A stretch of DNA of 64,000 nt, from the sequence record OR770614.1, one strand, 5' to 3'. Under the pieces are notes generated by a model. It did no database searches. It was given only the letters and a program-made list of their open reading frames with translations, and had not been told where the DNA came from. The position numbers and the translations under genes were made by a program. Shown here one piece after another: positions 32,958-36,531 of this stretch; position 1 is the stretch's first letter, and every line of letters starts with the position of its first letter.

Positions 32958-35900
32958 TTATTTGAATAAATCCATAATACGTTTATTATTGTTATCTATT
33001 GGTTTTTGTTGTTGACCAAATATAGAATTACTCATATCATTTCCTTCAATAACACTATTGATACGTTTAATTGAAGCAATATCTTTTCTTCTAGCTTCCT
33101 GTTCTTTTTTCATTCCTTCTGCATTTTCACTGTTAGGTGAGAGTTTAGAACCATATTTAACTTTTACAAATTTATTAATATCCTTTTCATAATAATATGC
33201 ATATAAACAGAATAAATAAGACATCATTAAGTCGTCATGGCCACCTGGTGGATGGTCAATACGTCCTTTAATCATTTGTAACGATTTAATTTCTTGGAAA
33301 AGTGGTTTATTATTAATTAAATGTGGTTTTTCTTCAACAAGCATAGATAATATTTCATTTAACATTATATCACGAGATTTTTTAGTTGTATCAATACCAT
33401 ATCTACGAGTTTCTTTTTTAACTTTTTCAGTTTTACTATATCTAGACATTTCATTAAATAAACTTTTATTTTCTACTTGCTTTTCAGCTACACGAGTTTT
33501 AAGCGTATAGAATAAATTAGATTCTAAACCATCATAAGTTATCATATGATCAATTACTGTTAAACCTGCATAGTTACGTTCAGGTATTAATATAGCGTTA
33601 GGTATATAGAAACCAACCAATTCTTTAATTAATTTTCTGAATGTAGGTCCATTAATTACATTATTTTTAAAAGTCATTACTGGTTCCAAAGTAGCTGGAT
33701 CCACTACAGTAAACGCTGTATTATCTCGTCCTAAACCACCAGACATATCAATACCAATAAGCCAATTTTTCTCTGTAATATTATCCATATATTTAATCAT
33801 ATTTACATAATAAGTTCTACCATCAATATTAAATTCAAGAGTATTATATATTTCTTTATTAGCATACATAGATATTTCAGTCATTTGTTCTTCAGAGAAT
33901 AATGAATCATCAGAACTATAAGCCCATTCCAATAATATCTCACGTTTAACTGCTTCTAAAGAACCAATTTGTCTTTTTTGTTTTTCTAACCAATCTTCAT
34001 CTTTACCTAATTCTTTATATGAATATTCTATATACATGAATTCATTATTTGAATTATCTTCCATGTATTTTTCTAATTTAGAATTTCCTTCTTCTTCACT
34101 ATCAATAAAATAATCATATATTTTTTCATTCCATTGAGCTGCTTCATTCATTTGTTGAAAGAAAAATTGCCCTTGAGATGTGTCGAGAGTTGAAGGGGTT
34201 GTGGTGATAAGGAGTCCATAGGGAGAACCGTTTTCTTTTGCAATTCTAGAAGCTGTACTTATTGCTGGTCATTTATGTTAGCTGCATGGATTATCATGCA
34301 GATCAGACTATATCATAATCTTTTTAAGATTTAATAAATTTAGTCGTTGAACATTATTTAATGATGCTGATTGGTTTTTAAACTTTTCAGCAGTTAATAT
34401 TATTCATCATCTATATTTCTATAAAGATGGAGCCTTTTTACTCATTGCTTCAAACATTACTTGATTATGTGGTATAAACGCCCACTCATCAAGCCAAACC
34501 ATAGGTCATTTACGTTAAACTGCATGGATTATCATGCAGATCAGACTATATCATAATTTTAATAATTTTTTCATAGGGATAATTAATTCTTCATTTATTC
34601 TATTCTGATAAGGGAGACGTATCATATTTATTCCTTTACTTCTTATAAATTTATCTTTTTCATTATCTAATTTTTTTATATCTTCAAGAGTTCTTGTGCG
34701 TTTATTTCTTTTATCATTAATAAAAGTTCCATAACCTTTTATATGTCCTTTTCCATCTACTTCAACTACAGTATTTATTTTTTTAAAATAAAAATCAAAT
34801 CTAAAACTAGATCCTTCAAAAGTAACTTCATTCTCATATTCTATATTATTCTCTTGAAGAAATTCAATAATGGCAATTTCTCCTATACTTTTAGAGCATA
34901 CACTACATCTTTTTCTTTTAAGTATATCATCTGGTCTTGTTTTAAATTTGTGTCCACAATCATTACTCTTCAAATAGATATAATCTTTGCTTCTAGTATA
35001 TTCAGTTAACACATTAAATTTATTATATCCAAATATCATATCTAATTCACCTTGAAACTCTTCTGTTGTCTTTTTAGATAATTCTTGACTATCTAATATG
35101 ATATAATTTTCATCATTTATACATCTATTACAGTTTACTGAATTATACTTCTTTCTTTTATCCATTAGAGTAGAAGGCTTTGCAAAATATCTTATATTTC
35201 CACATTTTCCACAACGGAATCTACACTTTTTATTCATTCCATTGAATCCTTCAATATAAGTATAATTAAATCCGAACTTATCTTTTAATTCTATTAAAAA
35301 AGTTTCTTTACCTTTAGAATTCTTGGGTTTTTCTGAATATCTACAATCTTTTCTATTACAGAATTTTCTCTTTAATCTTAATTTTTCAGTAGGTAAGAAA
35401 AAATCTCTATCACATATATTACAATGACATTTAATTGGTTCTTTAGAATTTTTATACTCTCCCAGTATTTCAAATTTATCTCCATTAATATCTTTTATTT
35501 CTTTAAAAGTTTTATTTCTCTGTTCTATGAATTTTTCTTTACTTTTAACACCTTTAGGCATTTTATCCCTCCGTTATCGTACTGATAAAAGAATGTTAAC
35601 AGTAAAAATTATTAAAATTGATTTTATTTAGTCGTTGAACACTAATTAAAGTGATGCTGATTAACTTCATTATTAGTCTTCCAGCAATTAAAAATCTTTA
35701 TGCACTGCATCTACATACGGTGCTACCTCTTCCTGCTTTGTTTGCCGTAATACATTGTATGATATTCATACACACTAGACTATATCTTATAATATTAATT
35801 ATCTCTATATTTAGTCGTTGAACAATCAATTTGATTGATGCTGATTGGTTTAGTATCTTTTTCAGCAGTTAATAGAGTTTAATGAGAGCACGTATTTTAC

Positions 35901-36531
35901 TCTCAGCATTTGTTGGAGGTGATACTGTTTTTATTGTGTTGTTATTACTTGCTAAAGAAAATTCATTAATTTTGTCTCTATCATTTTTATCACCAAAGTT
36001 AGCTAATACATAATCCGGTAAACATTTCTCTTTGAATAGATTTTTTAATCGTTTAAGGTTTTCAGTAGTGTCCGAGTACGATTTATGTGTAAATAACATT
36101 GTATAGTTATTACCTACCAATAACATAATCCATGAATAATAACATACTGCAGAATATGTTTTATAGTGCTGACGAGGTAACATTATTGCAGTATCTAAAT
36201 TATGCAACATACAAAAAGTCATAGCTAAATTACCTCTATGAAGTTCATACATTACTTTTCCACCCGGAACCGGAACTCTGATAACTTCTCTTAAATAAAA
36301 CCATATATTAAGTTTAGCTTCCCTAATAACACGTGTTTTCATTTCATTATCTAGATCTTCATCCCAAGGATCAACACCAATTAATTTCTTATCATATAGA
36401 GTTAATGGCAATCCATAATTTTGTATATTATTATCTTTAAGTTCTTTAGCAACTTTTAAAAAGCTTACATTATTAGTTTTATAATCGTAATAAATTTTTT
36501 TCTTTAATTTTGTTATAGCCATAGTCTTCAT
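32958..36531 (-). CDS. terL: terminase large subunit in four exons (36531-35899; 35745-35717; 34506-~34441; ~34269-32958; ~679 aa)
   Basis: Walker A-like LPRQHYKT, GRG motif in exon 2, Walker B VWLDE in exon 3, coupling motif ITTTP, nuclease IGIDMSGG and HDDLMM. Confidence 0.9.
34270..34439 (-). mobile_element. ORF-less group I mini-intron 3 of terL (~170 nt)
   Basis: P AACUGCUGAAA, Q AAUCAGCAUC, R GUUCAACGACUA, S AUGAUAUAGUCU, td-like P9 CUGCAUG...CAUGCAG, ends in AAAUG; the exact junction is ambiguous by 1 nt. Confidence 0.88.
34507..35716 (-). mobile_element. group I intron 2 of terL (1210 nt) with an endonuclease gene in L8
   Basis: P/Q/R elements at 35625-35685, S/P9 at 34507-34557; a perfect 16-bp P8 (35604-35619 / 34555-34570) flanks the ORF. 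Confidence 0.92.
34551..35561 (-). CDS. intron-encoded homing endonuclease: repeated zinc ribbons plus a C-terminal PD-(D/E)xK / Vsr-like domain
   Basis: Three CxxC zinc-ribbon units; SIGE...FRFDFY...VEVDGKGH; GGAGG RBS; the stop codon overlaps the intron S element. Confidence 0.85.
   Translation of the reverse strand: MPKGVKSKEKFIEQRNKTFKEIKDINGDKFEILGEYKNSKEPIKCHCNICDRDFFLPTEKLRLKRKFCNRKDCRYSEKPKNSKGKETFLIELKDKFGFNYTYIEGFNGMNKKCRFRCGKCGNIRYFAKPSTLMDKRKKYNSVNCNRCINDENYIILDSQELSKKTTEEFQGELDMIFGYNKFNVLTEYTRSKDYIYLKSNDCGHKFKTRPDDILKRKRCSVCSKSIGEIAIIEFLQENNIEYENEVTFEGSSFRFDFYFKKINTVVEVDGKGHIKGYGTFINDKRNKRTRTLEDIKKLDNEKDKFIRSKGINMIRLPYQNRINEELIIPMKKLLKL
35746..35898 (-). mobile_element. ORF-less group I mini-intron 1 of terL (153 nt)
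   Basis: P1 UGAGAGU/GCUCUCA; P, Q, R and S (AAGAUAUAGUCU) elements; terminal G; removal joins NAES to ANKAGRG in frame. Confidence 0.92.

Follow-up and report, generated by a model that had tools for sequence, protein, structure and literature searches.

The question raised by this locus is how the third intron of a phage terminase gene can be removed when the splice sites expected for a group I intron leave the joined exons one base out of frame. The window, the whole stretch of 64,000 nucleotides that was analysed, matches Staphylococcus phage vB_StaM_PB50 (OR770614) at 100%; PB50 is a jumbo phage of 274 kb that belongs to the AR9/PBS1-like group. Its gene for the large terminase subunit (terL) lies on the minus strand at 36531..32958, and three compact group I introns interrupt it; the annotation of this region in the deposited record is confined to two terminase fragments and one homing endonuclease. 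The terL gene has been reported among the intron-split genes of phages MarsHill, Madawaska and Machias, in which the mature TerL "could not be confidently reconstructed" (Korn et al.). In phage vB_SauM-UFV_DC4 terL is uninterrupted (678 codons), and the exon map of the PB50 gene was built by aligning this intron-less gene to PB50. The map, which is the first full one for the PB50/MarsHill/Madawaska/Machias group of phages, is as follows, with a slash marking splice junctions here and throughout.

35899..36531, minus strand: exon 1, 211 codons, ending ...GCU GAG AGU, collinear with UFV_DC4 terL
35746..35898, minus strand: intron 1, 153 nt, ORF-less, canonical GAGAGU/ ... ACG/GCA
35717..35745, minus strand: exon 2, a 29-nt micro-exon (ANKAGRGST + GU), BLAST match to UFV_DC4 of 93% over 29 nt
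34507..35716, minus strand: intron 2, 1210 nt, canonical ACCGU/ ... AAAUG/A CCU
34551..35561, minus strand: homing-endonuclease ORF inside intron 2, PHROG HNH/homing endonuclease phrog_559, E 1.7e-37
34441..34506, minus strand: exon 3 as the reading frame demands, 66 nt, with Walker B WLDEW, ending AUG AG
34440, minus strand: surplus U, the last exon base by the P1 rule (U.G with G34433), missing in every intron-less allele
34270..34439, minus strand: intron 3 by canonical rules, 170 nt, ORF-less
32958..34269, minus strand: exon 4, A + 436 codons PAISTASRIAKENG...TTTP... + stop

Exon 1 matches the PHROG terminase large subunit family phrog_32359 (E 3.9e-55) and exon 4 the terminase family phrog_2, with 92 homologues, while the arrangement WLDE ... 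P ... TTTP is gap-free and at fixed spacing in 75 homologues. Exon 3 gives an ungapped 65-nt BLAST match to UFV_DC4, the last base of which is G34441. For intron 1 there is a single canonical in-frame solution, with a P1 formed by GAGAGU and GCUCUC, and the Machias copy of this intron is identical.

Short exons and further introns are a recurrent feature of this gene. MarsHill has a terL exon of 14 nt (CGUGGUUCUACUGU), beside those of 29 and 66 nt in PB50, and an extra terL intron absent from PB50 is found between TTTP and STLD in Machias (piece L004, 2707-4230) and PALS_2 (piece L006, 1099-2610), with a 1101-bp ORF and the boundaries ACACCU/ ... UUUUG/AGUACU. Across these phages at least six distinct intron sites lie within about 180 nt of terL coding sequence.

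At intron 3 the two ends disagree by one base. Read on the minus strand, exon 3 ends GCA AUG AGU, its U being 34440, and the intron starts AAAAAGGCUCC. In the fold, exon GAGU pairs with GCUC as P1, which places the pair U34440.G34433 at the junction. The 3' end of the intron is AAAUG, the terminal G of which (G34270) is the first G after P9, as in all relatives for which orthologues define the 3' site, and exon 4 opens with A CCA GCA at 34269. Joining U34440 directly to A34269 gives AGU ACC AGC AAU AAG UAC AGC UUC UAG, which shifts the frame and runs into a stop after nine codons, and the preliminary description, which had reported this outcome, is borne out base for base. The reading frame needs either an exon end at G34441 or a 3' exon start at C34268, so that excision at U/...G/ does not restore the frame at intron 3. 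For each of the other five introns of the window canonical in-frame splicing is possible, as had also been stated.

The alleles without the intron define what has to be removed. The UFV_DC4 orthologue reads ...FEAMRPAVSTAS, that is ATG AGA CCA GCA (MRPAVS), and an intron-less metagenome allele reads ATGAG/ACCTGCTGTTTC (ATGAG/ACCTGC in the contig). At the same site AH12 has ATG CGT CCA, and MarsHill and LY01 have ATG AGG CCT, so that all close intron-less relatives encode Arg at the junction (AGA, AGG or CGU). The insert relative to these alleles is 171 nt and the canonical intron 170 nt; since the orthologues read ATG AGA CCA, it is 171 nt that must leave. The earlier claim that no canonical in-frame splice exists holds for sites supported by P1, but not for all sites, since U34444 joined with G34270 is in frame (EAIPAIS). 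This pair was rejected as it has no P1 guide partner and one residue is lost from a segment of invariant length.

Intron 3 has the elements of a group I core, which were assigned as follows.

34439-34434, minus strand: L1, followed by the guide GCUC at 34433-34430 and P2 at 34429-34408
34402-34398 with 34336-34332, minus strand: P3
34392-34387 with 34370-34365, minus strand: P4
34363-34352, minus strand: P6
34345-34341 with 34310-34306, minus strand: P7
34331-34317, minus strand: P8
34301-34282, minus strand: P9
34270, minus strand: terminal G

When intron 3 was folded alone a z-score of -3.87 was obtained, and P1, P2, P4, P5, P7, P8 and P9 were recovered. A family alignment was made of thirteen ORF-less introns (153-183 nt), intron 3 among them, and the strands of P4, P7 and J8/7 were invariant in all thirteen. 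With a hand-drawn core of 23 pairs (P3, P4, P6, P7, P8) 93.6% of the alignment cells were paired, against 26-47% when the core was slid, and compensatory changes were present at five of the seven P3 pairs and at all three P8 pairs. The alignment indicates that the P3-P7 pseudoknot of group I introns is present, and the model is that of a real, compact group I ribozyme with predicted splicing activity. Two features set intron 3 apart from its relatives, namely a P1 loop of only 6 nt, where the others have 9-12 nt, and the lack of the P1-P2 linker. The Rfam model Intron_gpI gave no match to it at the gathering score or at E up to 10; all six introns of the window were missed in this way, and as the whole family is missed this reads as a limit of the sensitivity of the model. 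The core motif GTTCAACGACTAAAT is present in 31, 31 and 33 copies in Machias, AH12 and LY01, respectively, and in 13 copies in the first 164 kb of PB50; the 250 kb of UFV_DC4 that were examined contain none.

Phage Machias, an independent isolate from another laboratory that is 97.7% identical to PB50 over the terL region, carries the same anomaly. Its 5' junction, GCG ATG AGT/AAAAAGGCTCC, and its 3' junction, AAATG/ACCAGCAAT, are both the same as in PB50, and synonymous differences between the two phages lie 5 nt upstream and 24 nt downstream of the junctions. The one-base conflict between the textbook group I boundaries and an essential, selected reading frame is therefore genuine and reproducible. 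As the anomaly is common to both phages, their differences arose afterwards, and these differences carry a record of the frames in which the gene is read. Over the terL exons, in the true frames, there are about 40 synonymous and 7 non-synonymous codon differences: 20 and 2 in exon 1, 2 and 0 in exon 3, and 14 and 5 in the aligned part of exon 4, the last counted in the exon 4 frame only. The opening 79 nt of exon 4 hold another four differences, every one of them synonymous when read in the frame of exon 4, and one of the four makes the 0-frame UAG of PB50 AAG in Machias. Reading in either wrong frame inverts the ratio of synonymous to non-synonymous differences. The first difference after the junction lies eight codons in and is already synonymous in the frame of exon 4. 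This pattern indicates that terL is kept functional by purifying selection on either side of intron 3, despite the anomaly. A second copy of terL was searched for in the PB50 genome and none was found. Given purifying selection in the true frames and a single terL, the comparison implies that in-frame joining of exons 3 and 4 must occur in vivo and that the frame must be correct by eight codons after the junction.

To place intron 3 among its relatives, every copy of the core was located in PB50 (first 164 kb), Machias, AH12 and LY01, the flanking exons were found in UFV_DC4, and for each gap it was asked whether any U/...G/ pair removes the required length. A canonical solution was available for 53 of the 55 single-intron gaps; the two without one are intron 3 of PB50 and intron 3 of Machias. 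Two other gaps that had been flagged as non-canonical proved to be alignment artefacts, one at 64798 of AH12 (a diverged exon) and one at 181835 of LY01 (a repeated AAAAATG together with a codon indel). No further carrier of intron 3 was found among terL relatives in viral contigs or metagenome contigs. Its 5' motif gave no match in viral contigs and six chance matches in metagenome contigs, all lacking an intron core. Public sequence runs containing parts of the window yielded relatives without intron 3 and nothing on splicing; one DNA contig among them is the intron-less allele and one RNA contig derives from an AH12-like phage.

Three of the relatives are of particular value for intron 3, as their guides are the same or nearly so. 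The intron at 42.7 kb and the RNA-polymerase intron g109 have the guide of intron 3 (GGCUC), and the nrdE intron has the near-identical GGCUCAA. In all three the in-frame cut falls after the U that is paired with the second G of the guide, the junctions being ...GAGU/CAGG at 42.7 kb, ...GAGU/CGGU in the RNA-polymerase beta gene and ...GGGU/CA in nrdE, and the 3' exon starts in each case with a C able to pair with the guide's first G.

Two excisions of 171 nt are conceivable at intron 3. The first would join an exon ending at G34441 to exon 4 after an intron ending at G34270 (AG/A, Arg), and the second an exon ending at U34440 after an intron ending at A34269 (AGU/CCA, Ser), with the junction peptides ...FEAMRPAISTASR and ...FEAMSPAISTASR, respectively. 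When the exons of a group I intron are ligated, the nucleoside that occupies the guanosine pocket is the leaving group. The upstream 5' shift retains the terminal G which this pocket requires, and P7 is unchanged across the family. The second excision needs an A in the pocket and the first only a re-registration of P1, for which reason the first is favoured. It is suggested that the productive 5' cut lies one base upstream of the canonical site, after G34441, recreating the Arg codon AGA, and a probability of about 0.4 is given to this reading. The cut would fall between G34441 and U34440, so that the cleavage-site pair would be G-C instead of the near-universal U.G. The normal terminal G34270 would still be used, AUG AG and A CCA would be joined to give AGA, and the P1 helix would only need to be docked one pair out of register. 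A non-canonical 5' cut would resolve the conflict most simply, and among the three explanations offered in the preliminary description (a non-canonical splice site, a programmed frameshift, or a sequencing or assembly error) the first is the one left standing.

The choice between an Arg and a Ser product was also considered at the protein level, as had been proposed in the form of MRP versus MSP among orthologues. The junction column was located in homologues with a 48-residue probe carrying X at the junction. Close relatives do have R here, but in a set of 75 homologues the position immediately before the conserved Pro is occupied by V, M, A, R, I, T, L, G, Y or S. The spacing between the DE of Walker B and this Pro is invariant in the same 75, so that length alone is constrained, and since the junction residue varies the protein comparison cannot choose between the two products.

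Several observations weigh against the upstream cut. The relatives with the same or near-identical guide cut after U, so that the ribozyme would be expected to cut after U34440. The other 53 gaps all conform to U/...G/, and a tolerance for other sites is not general in the family. The first G of the guide would, by analogy with the three relatives, fit the alternative GAGU/CC better. To our knowledge a purine as the last exon base is unreported in nature. The stronger proposal, that intron 3 would be the first natural group I intron to cut efficiently and obligatorily after a G in a G-C pair, one position upstream of an intact U.G, with its 6-nt P1 loop and missing P1-P2 linker re-registering the helix in the active site, is put forward as doubtful.

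The strongest rival holds that canonical splicing (U34440 to A34269) dominates and that TerL derives from a minor, mis-registered fraction, the intron being leaky, mildly harmful or dose-limiting and as yet unpurged. Cleavage after U is what P1 and the three relatives with the same or near-identical guide predict, and the closeness of PB50 and Machias (97.7% here) means that the state may be young. Packaging enzymes are needed in small amounts only. However, a one-base deletion would cure the defect, yet both lineages have kept the anomaly over about 40 synonymous changes in terL, and we regard dominant canonical splicing as unlikely. As it also draws TerL from a mis-registered cut, it overlaps with the upstream-cut reading; the weights of the two are not additive, and jointly they fall somewhat short of even odds.

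Correction could alternatively take place during translation, with canonical splicing being followed by a +1 shift, or by the reading of AGUA as a four-base codon, no later than the eighth codon beyond the junction. A +1 shift anywhere from AGU to that codon would restore the frame, and the junction residue is free to vary. Nevertheless, +1 re-pairing of the P-site tRNA is impossible at AGU ACC AGC AAU AAG UAC AGC UUC, an upstream stimulator resembling a Shine-Dalgarno sequence was not found, and Machias has a sense codon in place of the 0-frame stop of PB50. Frameshifting of the prfB type would absorb one base, but the slippery codon, the stop and the Shine-Dalgarno sequence of that system are here absent or not conserved. 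None of the three tRNA-like genes of the genome shows an 8-nt anticodon loop (one is for Asn, one has an undersized loop and one a 31-nt insert). The programmed frameshift that had been proposed for this site is thus unlikely, and recoding of either kind is considered improbable. Other translational routes were rejected: a +1 shift at the UAG, where Machias has AAG; a Ser-to-Ser ribosome hop from AGU to the AGU 13 nt further on, which loses RPAI including the near-invariant Pro; and reinitiation giving a split TerL, as a UGA immediately upstream closes the frame of exon 4, which offers no ATG, GTG or TTG before motif III.

The second 171-nt excision keeps the canonical 5' site and moves the 3' cut one base late, to follow A34269, giving AGU CCA and Met-Ser-Pro. 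Its attraction is that the guide G-G-C-U-C pairs perfectly with GAGU/C, as in the three relatives with C-initial 3' exons, and Ser is tolerated at the junction in at least one homologue. With P7 unchanged, though, an A in the guanosine pocket is chemically disfavoured, as follows from the established group I mechanism, and there is little likelihood that the late 3' cut is the one used. Among other splices, every canonical pair using G34265 leads to a stop, and skipping of exon 3 by joining 35717 to 34269 (ACC GU/A CCA) is in frame but loses 22 residues with Walker B. The weakest alternative is a one-base error or unrecognised heterogeneity in both deposited genomes, which is very improbable: the uracil DNA of these phages does interfere with sequencing (Korn et al.), but two independent isolates and assemblies agree at the junctions while differing at nearby synonymous sites, and neither exon flank has a homopolymer run.

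The composition of intron 3 suggests how the surplus base could have arisen. Its P1-P2 region agrees with that of g109 at 36 of 45 positions, with the common guide GGCUCC, whereas the stretch from J8/7 through P9 to the tail is identical at 43 of 46 positions to that of intron 2, which lies 240 nt upstream. Intron 3 is, by this comparison, a mosaic that combines two members of the family. The 5' third would have come from a g109-type donor, whose home 5' exon ends GAGU, and the 3' quarter would be intron 2-like, with a home 3' exon starting ACC. Insertion into ...AUGAG/ACC... by way of the short homologies GAG and ACC would then have produced AUGAG-U-[intron]-ACC, and the surplus U34440 would be a donor exon base brought in during assembly of the intron. 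On this inferred history of insertion, the surplus U probably arrived with the exon of the donor.

It should also be noted that, in each phage, introns 2 and 3 have one and the same sequence from J8/7 to P9 inclusive (34282-34316 and 34519-34553 in PB50; 2349-2400 and 2587-2640 of piece L004 in Machias). The P9 loop is inverted (AUAAUC versus GAUUAU) in both Machias introns relative to PB50, which indicates, at the level of sequence, that introns 2 and 3 exchange sequence with each other.

Other introns and tRNA-like genes of these phages showed unusual features of their own. The RNA-polymerase beta-prime gene of Machias has a 6-nt micro-exon, GCCGAU, at 2981-2986 of the record (piece L027, 1589-1594), flanked on either side by a complete group I intron (G M G / A D / Y D G D), and four of its six bases are in the downstream P1. 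A tRNA-like gene at about 205561-205632 of PB50 (piece L015, 1925-1996; minus strand; Rfam tRNA 45.8 bits), conserved in Machias, has an anticodon arm that can be drawn as a 5-bp stem closing 4 nt or as a 4-bp stem closing 6 nt, and ARAGORN assigned it a two-base anticodon. A second tRNA match at 205027-205129 (piece L015, 1391-1493; minus strand; 103 nt; Rfam 52.5 bits) was not called by ARAGORN and has some 31 extra nucleotides in the anticodon loop, too few for a group I intron. In the UFV_DC4 record a 94-nt 'tRNA-Phe' is annotated (piece L011, 2143-2236).

The compact introns of AR9, SPO1/SP82, Twort and the K-like phages share with this family the P3-P7 pseudoknot, P4-P6 and a J8/7 strand of the GAUAUAGUC type. 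As here, some of the introns of Bacillus and Staphylococcus phages carry homing-endonuclease ORFs and an essential gene may hold several introns, and exon skipping occurs in Twort. The difference is that here one intron does not fit the U/...G/ rule. Fungal mitochondrial cox1 introns with a C.G pair where a 5' splice site normally has U.G are reported to exist (Hur and Waring, Nucleic Acids Res, 1995). These are a natural precedent, in that a coding constraint keeps a cleavage-site pair other than U.G, but their last exon base is C and the site lies where P1 predicts it, whereas in intron 3 the base would be G, with a good U.G adjoining. The Tetrahymena ribozyme cleaves one position off when its docking contacts or J1/2 are altered. 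Such mis-registered docking of P1 resembles the upstream cut proposed here, with cleavage one pair away from U.G and the chemistry unchanged; the Tetrahymena cases, however, are laboratory mutants of reduced fidelity, and we know of no natural intron that depends on mis-registered P1 docking.

For annotators, it is of practical importance that Rfam overlooks the entire intron family of these phages. Few features of group I introns are as well conserved as the U.G wobble of their 5' splice site, from which exon boundaries are predicted. If the G-C site beside an intact U.G is used in intron 3, the register of the helix, and not the wobble alone, would set the cut in nature, and intron 3 would provide a natural 170-nt ribozyme in which this idea can be tested. 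For the phage, it is possible that the one-base offset sets the ratio of full-length, truncated and exon-skipped terminase.
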